This document shows, one piece after another, positions 1 to 54,099 of a DNA stretch of 64,000 nucleotides (its first letter is position 1; the number at the start of each line of letters is the position of its first letter). The notes beneath the pieces were generated by a model that was given only the letters and a program-made list of their open reading frames with translations, had not been told where the DNA came from and made no database searches. Where the stretch lies: assembly GCA_964035545.1 (NCBI GenBank), contig OZ037767.1, forward strand, positions 31,264,628-31,328,627, written 5' to 3'. Position numbers and translations under genes: made by a program. This DNA is from Bugula neritina. Taxonomy: Eukaryota; Animalia; Bryozoa.

Positions 1-695
1 AGCTGTTATCAAGTAGAGAGCAGGGCACATATTTAATTACCTCCCCAGTAAGAGAGTAGATTGTGAGTCTTTCACTTGGCCTATCAGGAACTACAACCTG
101 ATCATCAACAATAGCAAAGGTATTCAGATCTCTATGACCATCACCATGTGACCAGCTGGTCACCTGATTCCCACTGAGGTCATACACCTCCATTCTCCTA
201 CTATTATTACTGTACACCAAAACATACAGCTGATCTTCATATGCCCTAAGACTGTTGACGGAACCATCTATTTCAACAAATGACTGAGTAACATTATAGT
301 TCTCATCTACTCTGTCTACTTCACCACCATAGACCCCTACATAAGTGTTACCCTCATGACTACACACTGACCAACAATTTCTAGAAACATCAACAGACTG
401 CAAGAGTTTGAGAGAATTAGGAAGAGTTGAAGTTGTCACTCCTTGATCCAAACTAATAGATACGTCTGCAGCAGAAACTAAATTTACTTCTATGTCTCTC
501 TTCTCTCCTGTAAAGATAAGTTATAGAGTGAAGTGAATAATGATATTGTGTGTAATAATACAGTAAAGAAGTTATGATAGAGAAACTGTAGGGCTATCTA
601 TCTACCAACTAACCTTTGACCTCTAGAGTCATGACATCACACAGTTCTAGTTCAGGTATCTCAACAGCTACAAGTCTCTGTATTCTATCCTTAAT
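1..695 (-). pseudogene. Orphan 3' module of a TRIM-NHL-like paralog (copy 0): truncated exon 6 (614-695) plus open beta-propeller exon (507 to beyond window start)
   Basis: 1-507 translates without a stop (GEKRDIEVNLVSAADVSISLDQGVTTSTLPNSLKLLQSVDVSRNCWSVCSHEGNTYVG...), paralogous to 3411-4130 and 12108-12842, with an intact AG acceptor at 508-509. Exon-6 homology stops abruptly at ~695, and no RING/B-box exons lie between it and copy 1. Confidence 0.7.
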
Positions 696-2637
696 TAGTG
701 TTATATGACCCAAGCATAGTGTTCATTACCCAAGGGAAGACTCCAACCCAGGGAAACTTTTCCAGTTGACCTAGATATAGGTAAAAGGCTTATGCCTTTG
801 CACATATAATATGAGAGCATTTACAGACTTATATTGTTAGAAGCCTTCTTCTTCATGCCAAAGAGTATAAACAACACACTGTCAGTACTAAAGTTTAGTA
901 ACATAGACCTTTGCTGAAACTAATTGCAAACATATACAACACTCATTACATTACATGAAAACTAGTTGTGACAGAGACAAAGCAGCACTACAATTGAAAG
1001 GATATACAAAATTGAAGAAACTTACTGATTTGCTATACACCAATAACCCAGTTTACTAGCACATTTCATGAGGTAGCTGTACTGGCTATCAACCAAAGAA
1101 TGTGCTGTAGGTAAATGGGTTACCTGCAATTAGCTAAAGAAATAGCATATGCAATAGCAAAACATTTGTGCTGTTAGCCACAAGCCTTATATGTTTATTA
1201 AATATATAATATATGCTAGCTAAAGAGGATGCAAGCTAGATCATACCTGCTTGTAATTGCTCTACAATCAGCACCTGTATTTAATAGGAATAACTGCTAA
1301 GTGATCTCCACAATTATTACTCTTTTCTAATTTAAATAACAGTCATCTTGATTGGTTACATTTTTCAGTATTTTATATTTATATATATTTATTTTGGTTA
1401 TTTATGTATAGTGAATTAAATGGCTACTTCGCATGAAATGAATGTAATGTCTATATTTGTACAGGAATAAACAGCTCAACTCAGTGATAGCTTTACAAAT
1501 AAGTTGCATATGAAGGCTTATCCAATCAGGTTGCGAGATCAGTCAGCCACGCCCACAATTTACTATAGTTAAGTTTGCCTTCATAAACTTTGCAAATGTG
1601 AGCAAGAAGAGAAAATGAGCACATTTTTGGTGAAACATGCAAATCAACCAAATTGGGTACCAAATTCATCTAGGAAAGAGGATGCCTCCCTTCAAGATAG
1701 GATACATGTAGCTGTATATACATAGAGGGTGCTAAATTAACAAACTTGACTATAGAACTAAAAAAGCTAATAGGAATAAATAATGTGATATAAAATTTCA
1801 TATTTTATTGACATAAATGATGTACGTATATAAAATACACAACTCAATGACATTGCAAGTTAATGGTGTAATCTTGTATACAAATATGAAGATAAACTCA
1901 ACACATAGTTATATATAAAGTATAGATAGTTCTGTAGAATATACGTTATACTGATTGATACCAAAATATACTCAGTTTATAGAAATAAAGTCACAATTAG
2001 TAGATATTAACTATAAGAATCATATTTCAAGTGTATCTTCACAAGATTTAACAGAATATAATATGAAATAGTTACACAGTATACTGTATAGTAGTGTTAT
2101 CAGTATTAAGTCAGTTCTCTTGAGATCTTACATATTGAGAGGAGAGAAGCACGCCCCATACTAATCACTAGTAGATTCACTAGTAGAGACTCAGACTAAG
2201 TAAACTCCCCATCTATAACACAGAGATACAGAGAGTAGAATATATATATAGACTTTAGAGGTAACTCAAGGAATTTGGTTATTAAATTCAGTTCTATTAA
2301 ATATCTGAAATATCATGTTTCTTGTAATTTTATTGAATCATAAATATCTAGCCTTCAGTTAATAGAAATGTTGTTTTGAGTTGAATGTCACACTCCAGTA
2401 AATAAGAGTAAGCAGTGGGACTTGACGCCTTAGCACATCTTATAACCAAACTTAATAAAAGTTCAAGTCTTACTTTAAGCAACTCATCTCTAACTCAAGT
2501 GATAAATGTAAATATATAGTCTTGCTAATATATTAATGAAAAAGCACATAATAGTTAGTGATTGTAACGTGAATAATTAGCTTTATATCTTATTCTCAGA
2601 TCATTAGTTGCAAATAGAGAAGTAGAATACCTGCAGA

Positions 2638-5600
2638 TTATTTCAGCTGGTAGAACCGAACTTTTTTCCCATTATATCTGGGTACAATCAGAGTATCTCT
2701 ATACACATGGAGATCAAATACATGGCTATTCCCTTTAACAGTTGGATCTTCTATCTTAGCCAGCTGTGTGCCTGTAACAGGATATGATGTAATGACTCTA
2801 ATGGCATTCAAAATCTGTCTAACAACAAACTAGTAGTAATGATATTTTATTTAAACTGACAAATACCCAACCATGATATGAGACTATAACACAGGAGATC
2901 TATTTATAGCACTACAGATTTAGTATTTTATTCTTTATACTTTTAGTAGGTAGTTACTGGAAAGTTAGGTAAATTCAAGATGAAAAAGAAGTTTTATATA
3001 AAAAGCAATGAGATGTGAACCTTAATAATAACCATAAATTACAACACATATACAATTATATACGTAGTAAATGCTACAAGTGTTTATACATAAGCCATGT
3101 GTGAGAGCTTCAGCTTAACTCATTGTATATAGTGGTAGCTCTTTCTTAGAGCTAAGGCTACACACATGTTAAGAGAGGAGGTTATATTCTTCTATACTTC
3201 AGTGATTGTACAAGTGCAGCGTATTTATTAACTCATTTTTATTAAAACAATGAAATATAATACTGCTGACAGCTGTCATATTAGAAGCTGAGAATAGAGT
3301 CTGTCAGTATTCATGCTGAACTCTGAACCAAATATTAATCTACAGTATCACCAACTACACAATGATTTATAGTAGAGTAGCAGAAAATACCAGAAGAAAC
3401 ACCAACTAACCTGTCTTCACATCCAGTATCCAGATAGTAGTTTTACTGCTGTGGTTAGTCACAAGAATATATTTACTTCTATAGCAGGTCACACCTTGTG
3501 GGTTAGTCACATCCTTACATGTCCAGATGACTTTCTCTGTTGTCACGTCTAACTTAAATACTTGAGGGGAATAGTAATCAGAAACTACTACACAATCTCT
3601 GTCTGCTGCACATATAGCCGTATAACTGTTACTAAGTAGAGAGCAGGGCACGTGTTTAATTACCTCCCCAGTAAGAGAGTAGATGGTGAGTCTTTTACTT
3701 TGCCTATCAGGGACTACAACCTGATCATCAACTATAACAAGTTTATTACTATACCCACTATTATTATCACTATGGGTCCAGCTGGTCACCTGATTCCCAC
3801 TAAAGTCATACACTTCTACCTTCAAATTACTGCCATCACGCACTAAACTATACAGCTGATCTTTATATGCTGTAAGACCAAACACATAACCCTTGACTGT
3901 GACAAATGACTGAGTAACATTATAGTTCTCATCTACTCTGTCTACTCTACCAGGCAGTCCTACGTAAGTGTTACCCTCATATCTACAAACTGAGTAACAA
4001 TAATCAGAAACATCAACAGACTGCAAGAGTTGGAGAGAATTAGGAAGAGTAGAAGTTGTCACTCCTTGATCCAAACTAATAGATACGTCTGCTGTAGAAA
4101 CTATATCTACTTCTATGTCTCTCTTCTCTCCTGTAAAGTATATATAAATGTAGTAAAGTAAATAATAGTATTGCACAAGATAGTAAAGCATAAACAATAA
4201 TTGCGCTTAGTGAAGGTATGAAAGTGAAAGAACTACCTTTGACCTCTAGAGTCATGACATCACACAGTTCTAGTTCAGATATCTCAACAGATACAAGTCT
4301 CTGTATTCTATCCTTAATCTCCACATATCCTTCTACTAGATCCACCTGTGTAACGTATCAGAATGATGAGATAACATGAAAATTCACTGTGAGGGAGATT
4401 GTATTTTATTGTAGCACGACACACTAGTATAACCTGCTATCATCATAAAACATATCAACTTTGAACACAGTGATGTAGGCTATAGAACTGTATCCAAACC
4501 TTTGTAGTAACATTATGTGAGAAAACAACAAGTAATACAATGCCCTGAATATGTTAAGTAACTAGTTAATAAGACGACTCTTTCAGTTTAGTGTGCTCGA
4601 CTGTACAGACAAGGGCTGTGCATTGTTTAGTAAGCATAGTTGAGTTGAGTAGTAGAATATGTGACCAGTCGCAACAAAACCGGGGATGTGGCGGCGTTTA
4701 TAAAGTGTAGTAAATGAACGTTTAATTTGGAAATACTTAAATTTGAAATTGATTTCCAATTTTTAGATTTTGAACTTTTCTATTACAAAAAAAATCCAAG
4801 GATTTCAAAAATCATAGTTTCGTAAGCATTTAATGATTCCTTCAGCTCTAAAATTGCATTTAAAGTTGGTAACTAAGGCATTCAATTTTTTAAAAGATGA
4901 AAAAATTGCGAAGTTATCAAATAAAGAAAGAAGACAATTTTAGTCATTTTCATAGCGTGAGATCTTGCAAATTTATTTTTTATCAAATAAATTTAGCGTA
5001 CACCTCTTTCTTCGTATTCTCAGAAGTATCATATTTAAAATCGAAGGCTAGTTTTAGTTTTTCATCGTGCTCCATCTAAAGTTAGATTTTAAGTTACTGA
5101 GCTGTTTTGCCCTTTGGTGATAAATGCTGAACTTAATCTTTATCTTTAGCGTTCAAGCTTGAAAATCACAACAATACAGGTAATTATACTCAAAACAATC
5201 ATTTACGCTACTAACTTAGAATTGTTGCCAGGATTATTTGTCGTTATCAATTTATTAATATTTATACTATCACTAGGACTAGGAGTTGGTCTATTGACTC
5301 TATTCTATTCTATACTACTACTAGTAACTATTTAAATGACTATCACTATGACTCACAGTTTGAGGTACGGTTACTCATAATGATAATCATAATGAATATT
5401 ATTCATGATTTACTGATACTAGTATTTGGTAGTAAAACCAAATGTAGCTCATTAATATTAATAGTATAGGTAATTAATAACTATAAAATAAATTCACTAT
5501 TACTATTACTATTAGTATTTGAGTCTGACTCTGAGTTTCGCCTTCGGTCTTAAAACTTCATACTCATATTGATAGTATAATATTTATTGATTTATTCTAT

Positions 5601-8600
5601 AGTTGATATTTCAATTTACATTGGACTCACTCTTAGTAACTTTTAGCCTCTGTCTTAGATTTTGTCAATACAGTTACTGATAACTATTACTATTAGTATT
5701 ACCATTAGGCCTACTAGTCAAACTACAGTTTCCTTTTGTGATTTTTAAATTAGCTCACAGTTTGTTTTAAAATATAATGATAAAATCTTTATCACCTTAT
5801 GCAGGCTTACAGTTACTGTCAAAACTTAATTGATAATCATATTTATATTGATAAAAGCATCACCTATAACCAAATGAAATGGTAAATGTGATTAAATGTA
5901 AATGAGTATAATGATGAAATATTAATGAAAAGTCATGATGATTCTATAGTTGACTGACTTAGTTTTTCAGTAAGTTACTTTTAGTCTTATTTAGTGAGTA
6001 GTAACGCTAACTGAATGCATAAATAGTCTAAACTTTTTAATTTTATTATAAAAGATGAGCAAACATGTATTCATATTTTAAAGCAATTTATTGAATTCAA
6101 ATTGATTTTATAGTAAATGTCTTTAATAGATTCAGTTGCACGTAGCTAGCTTTTTTACTCAATTAAATGCCTGAGTAGTTAATAGTTATCAAAAGACATT
6201 GCTTCAAAATTGCCAATTGCAGATATGCTAGATATTCAAGTGCATAATGTGTAATTTTACTGATAATACTATGTTAATATAGAATAATCCGATATCCTGT
6301 ACATTTTAGAAAGTGGACTTGTAAGGGCATTGGAGTGAAGACTTATACCTACACAACTCTACTACCTATCAATCTAATACTCCTAATGTTGACACTCTGA
6401 ATTTTGGCTTGCAAGGTTATGGCTTCTGCTTATTTCATTCACAAAAATGTTTGCAGTCTTTTAATGATGTGCTTGAAAATTTTCAAGAATTTTTTTGATT
6501 TAAATTGTTCTGTTTAATTCAATAAATTTAAATGTTGATAAAATGCAGGATCACAGTTAACTGCTGCCATAATAGTACCACAAGAGTGTTTAGCCAACTA
6601 AATTTTTATAATATAACTGGGTATAATTTCTTATCAAGCTACCGTTTCCTTCTGTTATTTAAAAAAAGTCAACATGGTACTTCCAGCTCTGGAATAGACA
6701 ATAAGTGGGTAGATTGGCAGGATGGATGTCAAGTAGCAGCATCTATAATTTCTAGAAAATCAGCTGATGATAGTGATAAAGCTTTCGCCACATACATGAT
6801 GTTATGTGTCCATACTCCGTAAACTCATATTATGAAGACCAAGGAAGTAGAAAGATGAAAAGTGCCTTTTTTGCAAAAACCGTAGAAGCTACCTAATTTT
6901 CTTTTCTCGATAAGAGTCAATTCAAGCATAATGGTTGTATCCAGGCTGGATTTTATACTGCATTTAATTAATTTTTTAAAATAATGTATTTGATGTTTTA
7001 AATGTGAATATTAATGCCTAATAAAACTCAAAATTTTTAATAGCTAATTTTATGTTTATATTTTCAACGTCTCAGCTAAATCAATTGCTAAATTTAGTTG
7101 CCGTTAGAGATTATAGATATTTAGAAATTTATATATTAGAGATATTTATGAATGAATCTTGCATGATCGCATAATAGTCGAATAATTTTCTCATAAGTGT
7201 TCTACTCATTAAGCAATAATTATGAAACAGCACAGCTCAATATCGCTGCAGTTTGATATATTACACAATATATTAGAGGAGAGGAAGATATTCAATGTGT
7301 AAGGGGAAGCAGCTGCCATTTTGTTTTATGACTTCCTGCTGACTTGGATGCCTAATTTAAATATCTCAACACACAAACTTGCTGAAACATCCTCTTCTTT
7401 GCTGGAATTGTTAAACCTTTCAACCATTAAACAAAGTAAAAAGCGAATTAACAAATAAATTAGACAAAAAGTTTGGCGGCCATATTTACCTAATTTTATG
7501 TTGAGGCAGCATGAAAGCTAGTTTAACAGAAAGCCCAAGCTTTTACAATTATTTTGATACCAAATTTGTCACTTTTCCTATTATACGAAGACCCGTTGCT
7601 AAGGCTTGTAAATTGTAAACAAATAATTCTCAACTTATTCTAGAGTTGCCAACTTTGAACGCGATTTTCTCGGAACAGTAATTTAGGAATTTTAAAAACG
7701 TTAAAGTTTTTAAATACTGATATCTCGAATTCTATTTATGCTAGAGACTTCAAATAAAGTGCAAAATGTTTGAAAAAGTCTGCTCTATCACTCCATAGTA
7801 ATAACTAGGTTTTCAACATTTTATATACATCCCTTGTTTTGTGGTGCCAGGTCACATATGCTTATAGAGTATTAAAGTGTATCTATAGAGTAGGACTAGT
7901 ATTAGTGCTACTCTCTGCTCACGTATCACAACTGCTTCCCTTTTAGTAGTTTCTAAACATCAACTGCACAACAGTTAAACCAACAAATATTCTCTCCAGA
8001 AACACTCAACTCTACACACCTGATTGTTTTGTTTGAGTTGAGCTTCTATCTTCATTCTACTTTTACTCAGTTCAGACAAAACAGTTCCAACTTCTCTCTC
8101 CATGTATGCATCCAGTGCATCTTTAGTTTTCTTTCTACTAGCTAAGAACTCCTCTTCAAGTTTTTCATACTTTAGTCTCACCTCAACCAACTAAAACATA
8201 CGAGTAAACCATTAAAACCTTTACATGGTGTGACAGGAAACAAACACATTCTAGAAAATGTGATATCAATCACACCTGTTCATCACGCTGTGTATGGAGA
8301 ATGTCTAGTAACTCTCCTGTTTCAGTATCAAAGTCAGATATAGTTTTAGAAAGTTGTTTGAATAGAGAAGATACTTTGTTTCCTGTAGTAATCAGTTCTT
8401 CTGCATTCACCAGTTCCTTGATGAGGTCATCTAACCCAGCCATGTCATGCAGTGAACCTGAAAATGTTTTATTACTAAACTACAATTAATTTCACACAAC
8501 AAAGTCATCACGAAATCCACCAATCTATATATAAAAACCTCCCTTATATCTAGGTAGAGTCACAAACTTGTAACTGATTTAAGTCAACAGAAAAGATTGT

Positions 8601-9547
8601 TACAGCCATTTTATAGTGTAGTAAATGTTTTTCTGCTAAATTATCACATATGTTGATAACCATTGTGAACAAATAGCATTAGCATTATTTAAACAATATT
8701 TGTTTAACAAATTTTACCTCCAACACAAGAATCGGCCTGAGATAAACACTGCACACAAAACAGTTGAGCACAGAGTTTACATCCCTGAGATATTTGATAA
8801 TCTGTATGTTTAGAACAAACTCTTCTTTCCAGTCTCTTAGCTTGTATTCTATATTCAGATATGGTCATCTGCTGGTGGTCATCACTCACGTCATCGTGTG
8901 ACTACAAAATATATTGCGTGTCAGAAATCACTATGTTCTGTTTCCCTTCATTCATTTTTACACAGCTAAATTCTGCAGAAAGAATAATCAACATTAAAGT
9001 ACCTCTCGATGTTTCCCACAAAAGAGTTTACTGCACACAGTACAGTATATCACAGCTGGGATATTCTTTATCCCCTTCTTAGTACAGACAGTGCACGATG
9101 TAGAGTTGTCCTCTACATCAGCAGAAGGCAGAGTCTTTATACTCACATCAAACACTTCTCTGTAACATATAAAGATACAAACTCAATTGATAAAAACAGT
9201 ACAACTATTGAGTAAAACTTTTACCAGAAAAGCTAGCTCACGAGAAATTCATATATACAGGTTGATGTGCCACAAGTTGATTATTAATTAATTAACAAGC
9301 ATTTGTAGCTTTTCGCTCTATTTAACTACAAATTTGGCAGGTAAATATATTCAAATATATCTATATCAGTATTAAAGAATAAAACTTACCTGCACCAAGG
9401 ACATCTGATCAGATCATTCACATCAACATTTCTAGTTAGACAAAGTAAACAATGTATGTGACCACAGGGTAGAGACTTCGGGTTTTCAAGACCTTCCTTT
9501 AACAAACAAAACCCACACTCTTTCTCTCTGAGTTCTGCTTTTGCCAT
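2638..9547 (-). CDS. TRIM-like RING-Bbox-Bbox-coiled coil-NHL/beta-propeller protein, copy 1 (~604 aa)
   Basis: Exons 9547-9390 (MAKAELREKECGFC...LPCGHIHCLLC...CPWC, C3HC4 RING), 9159-9003 (B-box: CTVC...YCTVCSKLFCGKH), 8901-8718 (B-box: CSKH...CKLCAQLFCVQC), 8457-8276, 8190-8020, 4345-4237 (coiled coil), 4130-3411 and 2771-2638 (NHL-like blades, e.g. VVVSDY, PQGVT). All introns GT-AG; total 1815 nt in frame. Confidence 0.88.
4657..7859. mobile_element. Decayed DNA transposon with imperfect ~33-bp TIRs in intron 5 of TRIM copy 1
   Basis: Left end ATATGTGACCAGTCGCAACAAAACCGGGGATGT; reverse complement of right end ATATGTGACCTGGCACCACAAAACAAGGGATGT. The equivalent intron in copy 2 is 113 nt versus 3674 nt here. 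Superfamily not assigned. Confidence 0.75.
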
Positions 9548-9952
9548 TCCGAATTATATCTAGTTAAAACAAATTGAAATATCAAAATTGCAAAGATATA
9601 AAAACTTCAACTCATCAAAACATAAACTTAAAGTTTTACATTTGACTTCGTAATCGTCAATTGCAGCAGCAGCAGCAGTAGTAGTAGTAGTACACTTAGA
9701 GTTAGTACTACTAGTACTAGTACTACTAGTAGACGTAGTAGCAGTACTGGTACAGGTACGAGTACTAGTCTAACAGTAACTTTATGTTGAAACTTTTAAA
9801 AATAAAAGATTAGTTGTAAACTAATAAAGTTCTTAGGTTTTCATTTTCATTTACCACAGATTAGCTTACACAAGTTATGGTGTGTCGTAAAAGCTTCAAA
9901 TTTTCTTAAATTTTGTTGAAAAAATTGATAACTAACCACTTCACTTCCAACT

Positions 9953-9992
9953 GAAACGAAACTAGTAACTTGAAGGAAACATTTACCGGAAA
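9953..9992. promoter_or_regulatory. IRF-element/ISRE-like (GAAACGAAACT) plus ETS-like (CCGGAAA) motifs upstream of TRIM copy 1
   Basis: About 400 bp upstream of the ATG; the same pair is retained upstream of copy 2. Function is inferred from motif consensus only. Confidence 0.4.
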
Positions 9993-11332
9993 CGCAATCG
10001 AACAATCGTTACGAGAGTTGTTGCCAAGAGCATACAACTCCTAGCTGCACAGCTCTAGAGAATTGAAATATCACTGGCTTTCTGGATATATAAGATCATA
10101 GGAGTGTCAGATAAGTATATTTTGTAGCTATAAACTGGTTCACAATGGTAGGTGCTGTTAAACTGGCTATCATGCTATATATTATGTTTATGAAGCTATA
10201 TATCATTATGATAACTTAGTACAGAGAGTGTGTATGCAGTGTACACTGGCACTTGTTATTGAGAGAGAAAGGTGACTGGTATGGTAACACATGGTGAAAG
10301 AAATCTCAGTTGTGAATGCATATTATATATATAATATCTGTATCATGATGCACACACAACTATACCAGCTCTTCCTCCTTCAGGATAGAACATACTATGT
10401 TGTTTATTTATAAAATATGTAATAAACAAATAAGTTAGCTGCACATCTTACTATCAAAATCAAAATAATAAATAAACAACACAATATATTATATTGCCAT
10501 TAAATATTGTGCAAGAAATACAAAACTCGATGACATTGCAAGTTAATGGTGTAATATTGTATACAAATATGAAGATAAACTCAACACATAGTTATATATA
10601 AACTTTATAAAGTATAGATAGTTCTGTAGAATATACATTATACTGATTGATACCAAAATATACTCAGTTTATAGAAATAAAATAACAATTAGTAGATAAT
10701 AACTATAAGAATCATATTTCAAGTGTATCTTCACAAGATTTAACAGAATATAATATGAAATAGTTACACAGTATACTGTATAGTAGTGTTATCAGTATTA
10801 AGTCAGTTCTCTTGAGATCTTACATATTGAGAGGAGAGAAGCACGCCCCATACTAATCACTAGTAGATTCACTAGTAGAGACTCAGGCTAAGTAAACTCC
10901 CCATCTATAACACAGAGAAATACAGAGAGTAGAATATATATAGACTTTAGAGGTAACTCAAGGAATTTGGTTATTAAATTCAGTTCTATTAAATATCTGA
11001 AATATTATGTTTCATGTAATTTTATTGCATTATAAGTATATAGCCTTCAATTAATAGAATTGATGTTTTGAAATGAATGTCATATTTCCATACAATTATA
11101 GTCAATAGTGTGATTTGAAGCATTGGCACATCTTATAACTAAACTTAATAAACGTTCAAGTCTTACTTGGGGCAACACACCTCAACCTCAAGTCACAATT
11201 GCAAATATAGAGTCTTGCTAATATATTAATGAGAAAGCACTTAGTGGTTCGTAACGTGAATAATTAGCTTTATATTTCATTCTCAGACTATTAGGAGAAT
11301 AATTGTAAATAGAGAAGTAGAATACCTGCAGA

Positions 11333-14300
11333 CTATTTCAGCTGGTAGAACCGAACTTTCTTCTCACCACATCTGGGTATAATCAGAGTGTCTCTATACA
11401 CATGGAGATCAAATGTATTACTATCCTCTCTAACAGTTGGATCTTCTATCTTAGCCAGCTGTGTGCCTGTAACAGGATATGATGTAATGACTTCTAATGG
11501 CATTAAAATCTGTCTAACAACAAACTAGTAGTAATGATATTTTATTTAAACTGACAAATACCCAACCATGATATGAGACTATAACACAGGAGCTCTATTT
11601 ATAGCACTACAGATTTAGTATTTTATACTTTATACTCTTAGTACGTAGTCAATGGAAAGTTGGGTAAATTCAGGATGAAAAAGAAGTTTTATATAAAAAG
11701 CAATGAGATGTGAACCTTAATAATAACCATAAATTACAACACATATACAATTATATACGTAGTAAACGTTACAAGAGTGTTTATACATAAGCCATGTGTG
11801 AGAGCTTCAGCTTAACTCATTGTATATAGTGGTAGCTCTTTCTTAGAGCTAAGGCTACACACATGTTAAAAGAGGAGGTTACATTCTTCTATACTCCAGT
11901 GATTGTACAAATGCAGCATATTTATCAACTCATTTTTATTAAAGCAATGAAATATAATACTGCTGACAGCTGTCATATTAGAAGCTGAGAATAGAGTATT
12001 TTAGAATTCATGCTGAACTCTGAACTAAATATTAATCTACAGTATGACTAACTACACAATGAGTTATAGTAGAGTAGCAGAAAATACCAGAAGAAACACC
12101 AACTAACCTGTCTTCACATCCAGTATCCAGATAGTAATTTTACTGCTGCGGTTAGTCACAAGAATATATTTACTACTATAGCAGGTCACACCTTGTGGGT
12201 TAGTCACATCCTTACATGTCCAGATGACTTTCTCGGTTGTCAGGTCTAACTTAAATACTTGAGAGGAATTGTAATCAGTAACTACCACACAATCTCTGTC
12301 TGCTGCACATATAGCTACCCAATTGGTACTAAGTAGAGAGCAGGGCACGTGTTTAATTACCTCCCCAGTAAGAGAGTAGATTGTGAGTCTTTTACTTAGT
12401 CTATCAGGGACTACAATCTGACCATCAACTATAACAAGTTTATCAATATACCCACTATACCCAATACTAATATCACTGTGAGACCAGCCGGTCACCTGAT
12501 TCGCATGAAAGTCATACACTTTTACCTTCCAACTATTATTTCCATCACGCACTAAACTATACAGCTGATCTCTATATGCTGTAAGACCAAACACATAACC
12601 ACTGACTGTAACAAATGACTGAGTAACATTATAGTTCTCATCTACTCTGTCTACTCCATCACCATACAGTCCTACATAAGTGTTACCCTCATAGCTACAG
12701 ACTGAGTAACAACCTCTAGAAACATCAACAGACTGCAGGAGTTTGAGAGAATTAGGAAGAGTAGAAGTTGTCACTCCTTGATCCAAACTAATAGATACGT
12801 CTGCAGTAGGAACTATGTCTACCTCTATGTCTCTCTTCTCTTCTGTAAAGATAAGTTATACAGTAAAGTGAATAATGATATTGTGTGTAATAATACAGTA
12901 TAGAAGTTATGATAAAGAAACTGTAGAACCATCTATCTACCGACTAACCTTTGACCTCTAGAGTCATGATATCACACAGTATACTTATTGAAAGTATCAC
13001 GGGCTTTCCATGTTCCGATCTCAGATCGATCTCGCTGAGATCGATCTGAGAAATGTGCTCAGATCGATCGGTTTTCCATGAGAGTGTCAGATCGATCTCT
13101 CGGAGTTGCCTCCTCTTAAGTGAAGGATACTTTAAAAGTATAATTTGTTCACCTATTTGAGTGATTAAAGCTACTGCTGTTGAAAACAAGATGGTCGTAG
13201 TCTAAAATTTAATCCCAGCTATAAACTATACGCAGCAAAGCTTTCAGTGTATGGTAATTTGGCAAATTTAAAATAATTAATTTTAATTTTTTAGCTTGAC
13301 AGCTTATATAAAATTAATGGCTGTCTTGCAGATTATTAATAAACTTACAGGACTGTTAGGCTTAAAATTACAAAGAAAATAGCTAATAAAACTAAGTTTT
13401 AATCGTCATTTAAACTCAATGTAAATTCTCCCATTTTTTTACCTTCTACTGCATATAATTGAGTTTTCCTAATCATTGTACTGAAAGTCAAAGTTTTGGC
13501 ATCTGAAAAGGTGGCTATCATAATTATTTAATACTTTGCTTAGTAATTATCAACAAGTTATCATTTTTATTAGCAGACAACATTGTAGCGCGCAGTCTTT
13601 TTCTACTTCTCAGATCGATCTGGCGTCTTTCCATAGATCCATCGCGCTGAGATCGATCTGAGATCGGTACATGCACGGGCTTTCGCTGAGATCGATCTGA
13701 TTAATGTGCTCAGATCGATCGTTTTTCCATGAGAGTGTCAGATCGATCTCTCGGAGTTGCCTCCTCTTAGGTGAAGACTACTTTATTAATATAATTTTTT
13801 TACCCACCTGAGTGATAAAAGTTACTGCTGGTGAAAAACAAAATTTTCATAGTCTAAAATTTAACGTCAGCTATAAACTCTACGCAATAAAGCTTTTAAT
13901 ATGAAGTAATTTGGCCAATTTAAGATAATTGATTTTAATATTTTAGCTTGACAGCTTATATAAAATTAATAGCTGTTGTGCAGCTTATTCATAAACTTAC
14001 GGGACTATTAGGCTTAAAATTACGCAGCAAATAACTAATGACAGTGCGTTATACTAGTCGTTTAAATTCAATTTAAATGCTCTCACTTTTTGTATCTTCT
14101 ACCGTCTATAATTTTACATAATCAAGTTTTCTTAATCATTTTACTGAAAGTCAAAATGCTGTCACTTGAAAAAGTGGCTATCTTGATTATTAAGTACTTT
14201 GCTTAGTAATTAACAATAAGTTATCATTTTTATTAGCAGACGACATTTTAGCGAGCAGTCATTTTTCTACTTCTCAGATCGATCTTTCCTCTTTCCATGG

Positions 14301-16202
14301 TCTTATTGCCTTGAGATTGATCTGAGTTCGAGCTCTACAGACCGACCAGCTCAGAACGACTGAGATCGATCTTTGACGTCTTTCCATGGATCGATCTCGC
14401 TGAGATCGATCTGAGATCGGTACATGGAAAGCCGGTGATGGAAAGCCGGTGAATGAAAGTGAAAGAACTACCTTTGACCTCTAGAGTCATGACATCACAC
14501 AGTTCTAGTTCAGGTATCTCAACAGATACAAGTCTCTGTATTCTATCCTTAATCTCTGCATATCCTTCAACTAGATCCACCTGTAAATAGAGGTCAACTA
14601 TTATCAGAATAACAGGGTAGCTTCTTAACAGTATCAACTACACAACAATTAAACCAACAAATATTCTCTCTAGAAACACTCAACTCTACACACCTGATTG
14701 TTTTGTCTAAGTTGAGCTTCTATCTTCATTCTACTTTTACTCAGTTCAGACAAAACAGTTCCAACTTCTCTCTCCATGTATGCATCCAGTGCATCTTTAG
14801 TTTTCTTTCTACTAGCTAAGAACTCCTCTTCAACTTTCTCATACTTTAGTCTCACCTCAGCCAACTAAAAGATACCATTAAACCATTAAAACCTTTACAT
14901 GGTGTGACAGGAAACACGCATTCCAGAAAATGTGATATCAATCACACCTGTTCATCACGCTGTGTATGGAGAATGTCTAGTAACTCTCCTGTTTCAGTAT
15001 CAAAGTCAGATATAGTTTTAGAAAGTTGTTTGAAGAGAGAAGATACTTTGTCTTCTGTAGTAATCAGTTCTTCTACATTCACCAGTTCCTTGATGAGGTC
15101 ATCCAGACTAAGCATTTTATGATCTGAACCTGGAAAGTTATTACTAAACTACAGTTAATTTCACAAAACTGTCACAAAATCCACCAATTTGTTGTATAAA
15201 TAAAAATCTCCTTAAACTAGGTACGAGTCATCAACTAGTAACTAATTTAAGTCAACAGAGAATAATATTATAGTATAGTAAATATTCTTCTGCTAAATTA
15301 TCACACATGTTGATAGTTATTGTAAACAAATAGTATTAGGAGCAATATTTAAACAGTCTTTAGTTAACAAATTTTACCTCTGACACAAGAGTCGGTCTGT
15401 GATAAACACTGCACACAAAACAGTTGAGTACAAAGTTTACATCCCTGAGATATTTGGTAGTCTGTGTGTTTAGAACAAACTCTTCTTTCCAGTCGCTTAG
15501 CTTGTATTCTGTATTCTGAGATGGTCAACTGCTGGTGGTCATCACTCACGTCATCGTGTGACTACAAATCATATTGATTGTCAGAAATCACTATTTGGTT
15601 TTTTACTTTATTCATTTTTTACACAGCTAGATTCCGCAGAAAAAATAATCAACATTAAAGTACCTCTCTATGTTTCCCACAGAAGAGTTTACTGCACACA
15701 GTACAGTATATCACTGCTGGGATATTCTTCATCTCCTTCTTAGTACAGACAGTGCACGATGTAGAGTTGTCCTCTACATCAGCAGAAGGCAGAGTCTCTA
15801 TACTCACATCAAACACTGCTCTGTAACGTATAAAGATATAAGCTCAATTGATAAGAATAGTACAACTATTGAGTAAAACTTTTTTCAGCAGAGCTAGCTC
15901 CTGAGGTTGATGCGTCACAAGTTGATTATTAAGAAATCAACAAGTACTTTTATCTTTTAGTTCTATATTTAACAAAATGACAGGTAAATTTATTCAAATA
16001 AATTGATATCAGTAATCAGTATTAAAGAAAAAAAAACTTACCTGCACCAAGGGCACCTGATCAAGTCATTCACATCAACATTTTTAGTCAGACAAACTAC
16101 ACAATGTATGTGACCACATGGTAGAGATTTTGGGTTATTAAGACCTTCTTTCAGTAAACAAAACCCACACTCTATTGCTCTGGGCTGCTCTGCTTCTGCC
16201 AT
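11333..16202 (-). CDS. TRIM-like RING-Bbox-Bbox-coiled coil-NHL/beta-propeller protein, copy 2 (~610 aa)
   Basis: Exons 16202-16042, 15820-15664, 15561-15378, 15129-14948, 14864-14694, 14580-14472, 12842-12108, 11466-11333. Same phases as copy 1; 1833 nt in frame. Confidence 0.88.
12996..14452. mobile_element. Head-to-tail dimer of a MITE with GATCGATC-rich TIRs in intron 6 of TRIM copy 2
   Basis: Left ATCACGGGCTTTCCATGTTCCGATCTCAGATCGATCTC, right GAGATCGATCTGAGATCGGTACATGGAAAGCCGGTGAT (inverted). Two similar ~0.7-kb units (about 12996-13672 and 13673-14439); no coding capacity seen. Confidence 0.8.

Positions 16203-36894: not shown

Positions 36895-54099
<17,205 letters not shown>

Follow-up and report, generated by a model that had tools for sequence, protein, structure and literature searches.

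In animals without antibodies, germline-diversified recognition families such as TRIM5, finTRIM, VLR, FREP and NLR are central to the distinction between self and non-self. Primate TRIM5alpha and TRIM22 and the teleost finTRIM/btr genes are tandem, lineage-specific expansions of RING/B-box/coiled-coil ligases, and in TRIM5alpha and finTRIM purifying selection on the tripartite half is combined with positive selection in the surface loops of the C-terminal recognition domain. Here we analyse a window of 64,000 nucleotides (nt) from the bryozoan Bugula neritina (contig OZ037767.1, positions 31,264,628 to 31,328,627, forward strand), whose first 16,202 nt carry, on the minus strand, two complete genes and one truncated copy of a large family in which an NHL propeller takes the place of the vertebrate recognition domain. 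We consider it probable that both complete genes, which are expressed, and the 5'-truncated cassette belong to a germline repertoire of cytosolic recognition modules of the TRIM-NHL type. The family shares with TRIM5alpha and finTRIM the tandem expansion, the loop-focused selection and the conserved tripartite half, with a caveat for recombination, and by analogy the pattern appears to be the TRIM5alpha/finTRIM mode carried by an NHL propeller in a bryozoan. The variable domain of those families is B30.2/PRY-SPRY, and antiviral activity or interferon induction has been demonstrated for these vertebrate proteins, whereas the bryozoan family is known from sequence and model.

Elsewhere, the NHL propeller is the domain of a few conserved RNA regulators of development. 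These canonical TRIM-NHL proteins (Brat, Mei-P26, Thin/TRIM32, TRIM2, TRIM3, LIN-41/TRIM71 and NHL-2) have the same order of RING, B-boxes, coiled coil and C-terminal six-bladed NHL propeller as the bryozoan proteins. Flies have three of them, worms four and mammals five, and they are conserved, developmental and RNA-binding, with an electropositive top face (PMC4015489). The bryozoan family, in contrast, has at least 150 lineage-specific copies with 11-18% identity to canonical members, carries no filamin domain, and has a hypervariable top face without uniform positive charge. The nearest neighbours by language-model features (0.93-0.94) are multi-member NHL clusters of molluscs in the ESM Atlas, with proteins of about 270 amino acids; these features, rather than an alignment, suggest that the molluscan clusters and the bryozoan family are related lophotrochozoan expansions. 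A more distant parallel is offered by the plant S-locus F-box (SLF) genes, tandem arrays of E3 substrate-recognition genes that diversify, exchange sequence and collectively provide a non-self repertoire. The bryozoan arrays likewise consist of diversified putative E3 recognition proteins that exchange sequence, but SLF proteins belong to F-box/SCF rather than RING-TRIM ligases, sit at a single polymorphic locus tied to mating, and come from a different kingdom. A full-text literature search returned no bryozoan account of this TRIM-NHL family, and TRIM, NHL and immune genes go unmentioned in the draft-genome paper of B. neritina.

Gene structure

Three open propeller exons of about 720 nt lie on the minus strand of positions 1-16202 (12106-12840, 3410-4130 and 1-507). 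Guided by full-length proteins of Watersipora subatra in tblastn searches, we resolved eight coding exons in each of two complete genes, gene 1 (2641-9547) and gene 2 (11339-16202), in the order RING with start codon, B-box 1, B-box 2, two coiled-coil exons, a short linker, the large propeller exon and a last exon of about 43 codons. The guide proteins are 33-44% identical and are annotated as 'uncharacterized' or 'tripartite motif-containing protein 2-like'. The first-pass annotation of this DNA, made from the letters alone, had described a TRIM-NHL-like array; this is borne out for genes 1 and 2, but copy 3 is 5'-truncated and amounts to a propeller cassette. The whole unit has been duplicated in tandem, with 90.8% identity between 1800-4173 and 10486-12883 and 88% in the upstream half (7946-9000 against 14617-15661). 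RNA evidence, where cited below, consists of assembled RNA-like contigs (contigs guessed to be RNA) from four runs of four studies on unchallenged samples.

Gene 1:
9390-9547, minus: exon 1, with start codon 9545-9547 and C3HC4 RING; Met, eight zinc ligands, then a GT donor; tblastn match to Watersipora TRIM N-termini
9003-9161, minus: B-box 1 exon, limits approximate and set by homology; tblastn to Watersipora; sub-threshold Pfam matches to ANCHR-like B-box and zf-B_box
8716-8901, minus: B-box 2 exon, limits approximate; Pfam zf-B_box 18.5 bits against a cut-off of 24.1; at least 150 homologous exons genome-wide, adjoining propeller exons
8273-8461, minus: putative coiled-coil exon 1, limits approximate; tblastn to Watersipora proteins
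8020-8181, minus: putative coiled-coil exon 2, its 3' end at 8020 taken from reading frame and donor; tblastn
4237-4345, minus: linker exon; AG acceptor and GT donor in the sequence; joint 4129/4236 in four runs
3410-4130, minus: propeller exon, blades 1-5 as far as strand c of blade 5; open frame; joints 4129/4236 and 2770/3410 in four RNA-like runs
2641-2772, minus: last coding exon (strand d of blade 5, and blade 6), stop codon 2641-2643; acceptor from joint 2770/3410 and reading phase; tblastn to Watersipora C-termini
1800-2640, minus: 3' untranslated region (UTR) with optional intron 2213-2630; RNA-like contigs over 1801-2212, none over 801-1800; joint 2212/2631 in one run

Gene 2:
16042-16202, minus: exon 1, with start codon 16200-16202 and RING; read from the sequence; Pfam zf-C3HC4 21.5 bits
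15376-15822, minus: B-box 1 and B-box 2 exons with the intervening intron; tblastn and Pfam
14691-15130, minus: putative coiled-coil exons (14945-15130 and about 14694-14855); tblastn; pN/pS against gene 1 0.25-0.89
14472-14580, minus: full linker exon, 97% identical to the linker of gene 1
12947-12991, minus: remnant duplicate of the linker 3' end, 45 nt, just upstream of the propeller exon; alignment
12106-12840, minus: propeller exon, a mosaic; open frame, sliding identity, AlphaFold2 model
11339-11467, minus: last coding exon, by homology to gene 1 and Watersipora proteins

Copy 3:
613-695, minus: linker fragment, the 3' 83 nt, without acceptor; alignments place the duplication breakpoint inside the exon
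1-507, minus, with about 213 nt more past the window start: propeller exon, open for 245 codons and followed, beyond the window, by a last exon that is open too

The N-terminal half has the features of a tripartite ligase. Both genes start with Met and keep all eight zinc ligands of the C3HC4 RING, and the Pfam zf-C3HC4 scores (21.1 bits in gene 1, 21.5 in gene 2) are just above the gathering cut-off of 21.0. The B-box candidates are two Cys/His-rich exons in the correct order whose matches are all sub-threshold (zf-B_box 18.0-18.5 bits, ANCHR-like B-box 21 bits), as they are in the Watersipora homologues. In the position of the coiled coil, between B-box and C-terminal domain, are two exons of about 60 amino acids that are rich in Glu, Lys and Leu. 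Across the exons from RING to linker, the ratio of non-synonymous to synonymous differences per site (pN/pS) between genes 1 and 2 is 0.25; the ligase half is under purifying selection and has been held constant. The intron between the second coiled-coil exon and the linker has about 3.6 kilobases (kb) of extra DNA in gene 1 (4350-7946) and is about 100 nt long in gene 2.

The propeller fold

Single propeller sequences gave little indication of their family: there was no Pfam NHL match, only a sub-threshold PQQ_2 and no SPRY, and a search of PDB returned nothing useful (best E 0.008, a YVTN propeller). A family profile of 140 members, in contrast, had NHL domains as its best matches, with Thin first (E 1.1e-11), followed by TRIM3, Brat, TRIM2, NHL-2, TRIM71 and Mei-P26 (E 1e-11 to 1e-6), and these outranked YncE, PQQ and WD40 propellers.

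The AlphaFold2 model of the large exon of gene 2, computed with the family alignment, has a mean predicted local distance difference test (pLDDT) of 91.8 and a predicted template-modelling score (pTM) of 0.86. It contains 19 propeller strands, or four and three-quarter blades, and Foldseek matched it to generic propellers (template-modelling score about 0.6), with NHL domains near the top. The propeller of the window was modelled as the large exon only, and closure of the six-bladed ring was checked on a full-length Watersipora homologue that is 43% identical. Its C-terminal model (pLDDT 85.6) has five four-stranded blades and a sixth made of three C-terminal strands and a closing N-terminal strand. 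The 16 best PDB matches to this model are all NHL domains of TRIM-NHL proteins (Z 26.3-29.4, root-mean-square deviation 2.0-4.0 over 236-267 residues), and the ESM-Atlas neighbours are NHL-annotated clusters, mostly molluscan. Because the profile, structural and ESM-Atlas neighbours are all NHL, the label 'TRIM-NHL-like' is right, and the models place the family as a very divergent, filamin-less, bryozoan-specific branch of TRIM-NHL (class VII TRIM).

Diversification of the top-face loops

In an alignment of 30 paralogous exons the frame is almost constant, and the variation is gathered in short patches that include in-frame indels. The conserved scaffold, motifs and loop strings that the first-pass annotation had quoted for the three propeller exons are all present in the translations, with indels in the short patches. 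Between genes 1 and 2, 28 of the 162 nt in top-loop codons differ (17.3%), against 34 of 637 (5.3%) in the adjacent intron (Fisher p=3.7e-6), which agrees with the earlier remark that the loops are more diverged than neighbouring non-coding DNA. The flanks of the two copies, which had been called nearly identical, are similar and mostly at about 95% identity (intron 2773-3409, 94.7%; 3' region 1800-2299, 94.8%), but one 3' stretch (2300-2640) is lower, at 84.8%; the propeller exon stands at 92.0%. Outside the top loops the exon differs at 5.6% of positions, on par with the intron. The last exon of the two genes has a pN/pS of 1.06, and here too the changes fall in d-a and b-c loops, those of blade 6.

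To avoid circularity, codons were classed by the DSSP strands of the model and not by their variability, into strands, top loops (b-c and d-a), bottom loops (a-b and c-d) and N-terminal lead. The top surface of an NHL domain consists of the b-c and d-a loops, and Brat uses this surface as its platform for RNA binding (PMC4015489). Rates of non-synonymous and synonymous substitution (dN/dS, Nei-Gojobori) were compared in two independent clades of paralogues, one from C3 (13 members) and one from C6 (12 members):

Top loops: mean entropy 1.24 bits; dN/dS 1.92 in C3, 1.31 in C6
Strands: mean entropy 0.51 bits; dN/dS 0.38 in C3, 0.56 in C6
Bottom loops: mean entropy 0.60 bits; dN/dS 0.90 in C3, 0.52 in C6

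The three copies of the window alone have a top-loop dN/dS of 2.56. We then fitted codon models M0, M1a and M2a, summing over ancestors, on a nucleotide tree with scaled branch lengths, where omega is the modelled dN/dS and 2dlnL is twice the gain in log-likelihood:

C3 clade: M0 omega 0.81; M2a over M1a 2dlnL 145.4; M2a omega 5.9 at 12.6% of sites
C6 clade: M0 omega 0.92; M2a over M1a 2dlnL 150.7; M2a omega 6.7 at 12.0% of sites

Sites with a posterior above 0.9 number 23 in C3 and 25 in C6, and 15 and 14 of them fall in top loops (odds ratio 6.8, p=3e-5, and 4.5, p=1e-3, respectively). None lies in a bottom loop in either clade, most of the selected sites classed as strand adjoin a top loop, and thirteen selected sites are common to both clades (p=2e-9). 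On the propeller exon of gene 2 the loops that carry these sites are the following:

12706-12726, minus: top-face loop into strand a of blade 1 (residues 39-45); sites 42, 43 and 45 with posterior > 0.99 for omega > 1
12655-12666, minus: b-c loop, blade 1 (residues 59-62); site 59 with posterior 1.0 in both clades; indels
12589-12609, minus: d-a loop, blade 1 to 2 (residues 78-84); sites 81, 82 and 84 selected
12526-12549, minus: b-c loop, blade 2 (residues 98-105); sites 98, 101, 102, 104 and 105 selected in one or both clades; indels
12436-12477, minus: long d-a loop, blade 2 to 3 (residues 122-135), the most variable patch; sites 124, 129-132 and 134 selected; in-frame indels, length varying among paralogues
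12391-12402, minus: b-c loop, blade 3 (residues 147-150); site 148 with posterior > 0.99 in both clades
12316-12342, minus: d-a loop, blade 3 to 4 (residues 167-175); sites 172, 174 and 175 selected
12262-12273, minus: b-c loop, blade 4 (residues 190-193); site 190 with posterior >= 0.999 in both clades
12193-12213, minus: d-a loop, blade 4 to 5 (residues 210-216); site 214 selected in both clades, 216 in one
12133-12150, minus: b-c loop, blade 5 (residues 231-236); site 231 with posterior 1.0 in both clades

Several points weigh against a repertoire shaped by selection on one face. Recombination inflates likelihood-ratio tests of site models, and here it is pervasive: a PHI-type permutation test gave p=0.03 in C3 and p<0.0002 in C6, and all four gametes occur in more than half of the pairs of informative sites. 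When a one-ratio GY+F3X4 model is fitted to all 64 top-loop codons of 28 paralogues, omega is 0.93 and not above 1. Sites called in C6 and measured on C3 pairs have a pN/pS of only 1.09 against local synonymous change. The alignment is uncertain in the indel-rich d-a loop of blades 2/3, and the assignment of faces rests on DSSP strand topology rather than on inspected coordinates. On the side of expression, the contigs were matched at >=95% identity, at which close paralogues and alleles are inseparable.

Since recombination among paralogues weakens tree-based tests, we also ran tests that need no tree. In six disjoint pairs per clade, top-loop pN/pS is 1.64 in C3 (Fisher p=0.011) and 1.91 in C6 (p=0.004). 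Sites called in C3 have a pN/pS of 2.79 when measured on C6 pairs (p=0.001), and the C6-called sites measured on C3 pairs reach 2.3 against the synonymous change of the whole exon (p=2e-9). The notion that the top-loop class as a whole has omega > 1 was rejected on the one-ratio value of 0.93, and it is therefore a subset of loop positions, not the whole class, that is selected. With this, the tree-free tests agree with positive selection at a subset of top-loop positions.

A reading without adaptive diversification would have unconstrained loops that drift freely while gene conversion homogenises scaffold and introns. Strong recombination, the one-ratio omega and the equal divergence of scaffold and intron between genes 1 and 2 (5.6% against 5.3%) would all fit it. 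Neutral loops cannot beat the neutral rate, yet the top-loop codons show three times the intron divergence (p=4e-6), and the tree-free pN/pS of 1.6-1.9 on independent pairs, the recurrence of the same 13 sites in two separate clades, the roughly 125 exons that are still open and a scaffold pN/pS of about 0.4 argue in the same direction. We regard drift in unconstrained loops as very improbable. Positive selection, which the first-pass annotation had proposed, is thus upheld in a narrower form, for a subset of positions where substitution exceeds both synonymous and intron rates, and it is entangled with gene conversion. The annotation had also foreseen that the idea would suffer if omega at the loop sites were not above 1, if the variable residues were scattered over the propeller or if the genome held only two or three copies without immune induction. 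The fast sites lie in the b-c and d-a loops and in no bottom loop, with omega above 1, and the genome has at least 150 propeller exons, and therefore nothing in site rates, site positions or copy number speaks against it.

Composition of the selected sites

Tyr/Trp (13% against 5.5%), Asn (12% against 3.5%) and His (5.3% against 1.3%) are over-represented at the selected sites; Lys/Arg (9.5% against 9.7%) are not. A crude count from sequence, covering five of the six blades, puts the top-loop net charge of 28 paralogues between -3 and +5, with a mean of +1.5; by a sequence count, the bottom loops are negatively charged. The composition hints at varied protein-like ligands over a common RNA-binding mode.

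These figures bear on the idea that the proteins are RNA-binding regulators in the canonical style, with a top face diversified for many RNA motifs of endogenous mRNA, transposon or viral origin. The closest structural and profile relatives (Brat, Mei-P26, TRIM71 and NHL-2) bind RNA by this same face (PMC4015489), and electronegative bottom loops are found in Brat as well. The missing enrichment in Lys/Arg and the lack of a uniformly positive top-loop charge speak against such a function, and the excess of Tyr, Trp, Asn and His resembles a protein-binding paratope. We hold RNA motifs as the general target of the family to be unlikely.

Transcription and splicing

Joints 2770/3410 and 4129/4236 occur in all four runs, with GT..AG borders on the minus strand, and the introns and the 801-1800 spacer are empty of contigs in three of the four. 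The joints define an intron of 106 nt before the propeller exon of gene 1 and one of 639 nt after it, and the acceptor of the last exon could be fixed because only joint 2770/3410 gives the right phase. Contigs that run off at 4348 pass into coding sequence for the end of coiled-coil exon 2, with the Arg that gene 2 carries, and gene 2, another paralogue or an allele is therefore their source. Gene 1 or a very close paralogue is transcribed and spliced, with level and strand beyond the reach of the contigs.

Two further joints, each in one run, suggest minor transcript forms: 2770/4236 skips the whole propeller exon, and 2212/2631 removes the 418-nt intron from the 3' UTR. Within the long intron of gene 1, 5394-5708 shows many conflicting joints and loose ends in the RNA-like contigs and is probably a dispersed repeat. 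At 3502, contigs of all four runs have T in place of G, which changes Asn to Lys at a selected d-a loop position between blades 4 and 5 of gene 1; this may be an allele, or the reads may come from a close paralogue with Lys. The region of copy 3 (1-700) is covered by contigs at >=95% identity in all four runs, possibly of paralogue origin, and no joint at its small intron is listed among the contig joints.

A mosaic gene and an orphan cassette

A sliding comparison of sequence identity shows gene 2 to be chimeric. Over its small intron and the first ~150 nt of its propeller exon, identity is 91% with copy 3 and only 65-76% with gene 1. From about 3940 (in gene 1 coordinates), through the remainder of the exon, the following intron and the 3' region, gene 2 matches gene 1 at 88-100% and is unalignable to copy 3. 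About 1.5 kb of inserted DNA separates the full linker exon from the 45-nt linker duplicate at the propeller exon, so that the intron between linker and propeller (12841-14471) is about 1.6 kb long, compared with 106 nt in gene 1 and copy 3; this intron has GATC-rich short repeats. Depending on the exon, the synonymous divergence of the two genes lies anywhere from 0.06 to 0.45.

Homology in copy 3 starts 28 nt inside the linker exon, and upstream of it there are no RING, B-box or coiled-coil exons. Its non-coding DNA is unalignable to that of the other two copies (about 50% identity), and its scaffold (pN/pS 0.41) and top loops (1.59) resemble those of complete genes. Copy 3 may be a recent relic, or it may serve as a donor for conversion or as an alternative 3' cassette. 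With this in mind one may speculate about a cassette-exchange repertoire, in which more than 100 E3 ligases would carry antibody-like paratopes on their NHL top faces, reassorted by germline gene conversion with headless cassettes as donors or alternative 3' cassettes, and would form the main intracellular non-self recognition system of bryozoans. We offer this extended version tentatively and hold it to be less likely than not.

Size and distribution of the family

A genome search with the propeller exon gave at least 150 scored matches among 212 candidates. About 125 of the matches cover nearly the whole exon without a stop, and stops occur in only five. The exons form tandem clusters on C3, C4, C5, C6, C7 and C8, with further matches on C1, C2 and C9, and the B-box 2 exon has at least 150 matches in the same clusters. 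A neighbouring cluster, C3:30789000-30875000, lies about 400 kb from the window and holds 11 closely related genes on the opposite strand at a spacing of 6-12 kb; its 11 B-box exons pair with 11 propeller exons, compared with two and three in the present cluster, and its propeller exons share 67-84% identity with the one in gene 2. A TGA stop (30819989) interrupts one of the B-box exons of the neighbouring cluster, and one of its propeller exons is truncated. In a set of 1.84 billion representative proteins, HMMER found only 402 relatives (E <= 0.001), and all those with names among the ones looked up are from Watersipora subatra.

In a colonial animal, tandem arrays with a diversified recognition surface on an E3 scaffold and shuffling between neighbours also bring to mind allorecognition or compatibility, in colony fusion or between gametes or larvae, where diversified E3 receptors would together recognise polymorphic partner proteins, much as in the SLF arrays of plants; the non-synonymous variant at the selected position 3502 (Asn to Lys), shared by the four RNA data sets, would fit such a system. 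The proteins, however, begin with a RING, the exons that were read show no signal peptide or membrane segment, the family extends over at least eight chromosomes instead of forming one haplotype block, the gene 1 exon has few variants over four studies, and a partner locus is not known. We would call an allorecognition function quite unlikely.

Other features of the window

On the minus strand at 42400-50100 is a GC-rich island (50-53% guanine and cytosine in a genome of 30-35%) with broken frames that contain aspartic-protease, reverse-transcriptase/RNase H and integrase-like motifs. This island resembles a decayed Ty3/gypsy-type retroelement, unrelated to the propeller genes, and on the strength of these motifs an origin as foreign DNA was rejected. 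The island has no tandem repeats and no Rfam match, and an Rfam scan of the window found nothing.

Possible mode of action and significance

How might such a repertoire work? In the reading that we favour, a cytosolic TRIM-NHL repertoire, the N-terminal RING would presumably be the E2-recruiting ubiquitin-ligase module and the coiled coil would serve dimerisation. Some 25-35 positions of the top face, in the b-c and d-a loops, far outpace silent sites and introns, and variants are shuffled among tandem paralogues by recombination or gene conversion. Each propeller would have its own fast-evolving target to bind, most plausibly a protein or RNA from a virus, an intracellular parasite or a mobile element, and binding would lead to marking of the target, or to signalling, through ubiquitination. 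TRIM5alpha and the finTRIMs of fish use their B30.2 loops in this manner. It is in this sense that we infer E3 activity, a cytosolic location, a class of ligands and a role in immunity.

To our knowledge, bryozoan immunity is essentially undescribed, and we know of no immune receptors described for the phylum. B. neritina is also the host of a bryostatin-producing symbiont. The propeller scaffold, of about 285 amino acids, is compact and well folded, and its roughly 30 naturally tolerated hypervariable positions on one face make ligand discovery tractable; the same scaffold may be useful for the engineering of binders. The mosaic gene 2 and the orphan copy 3, in turn, provide a concrete locus for studying the exchange of recognition cassettes between tandem genes.

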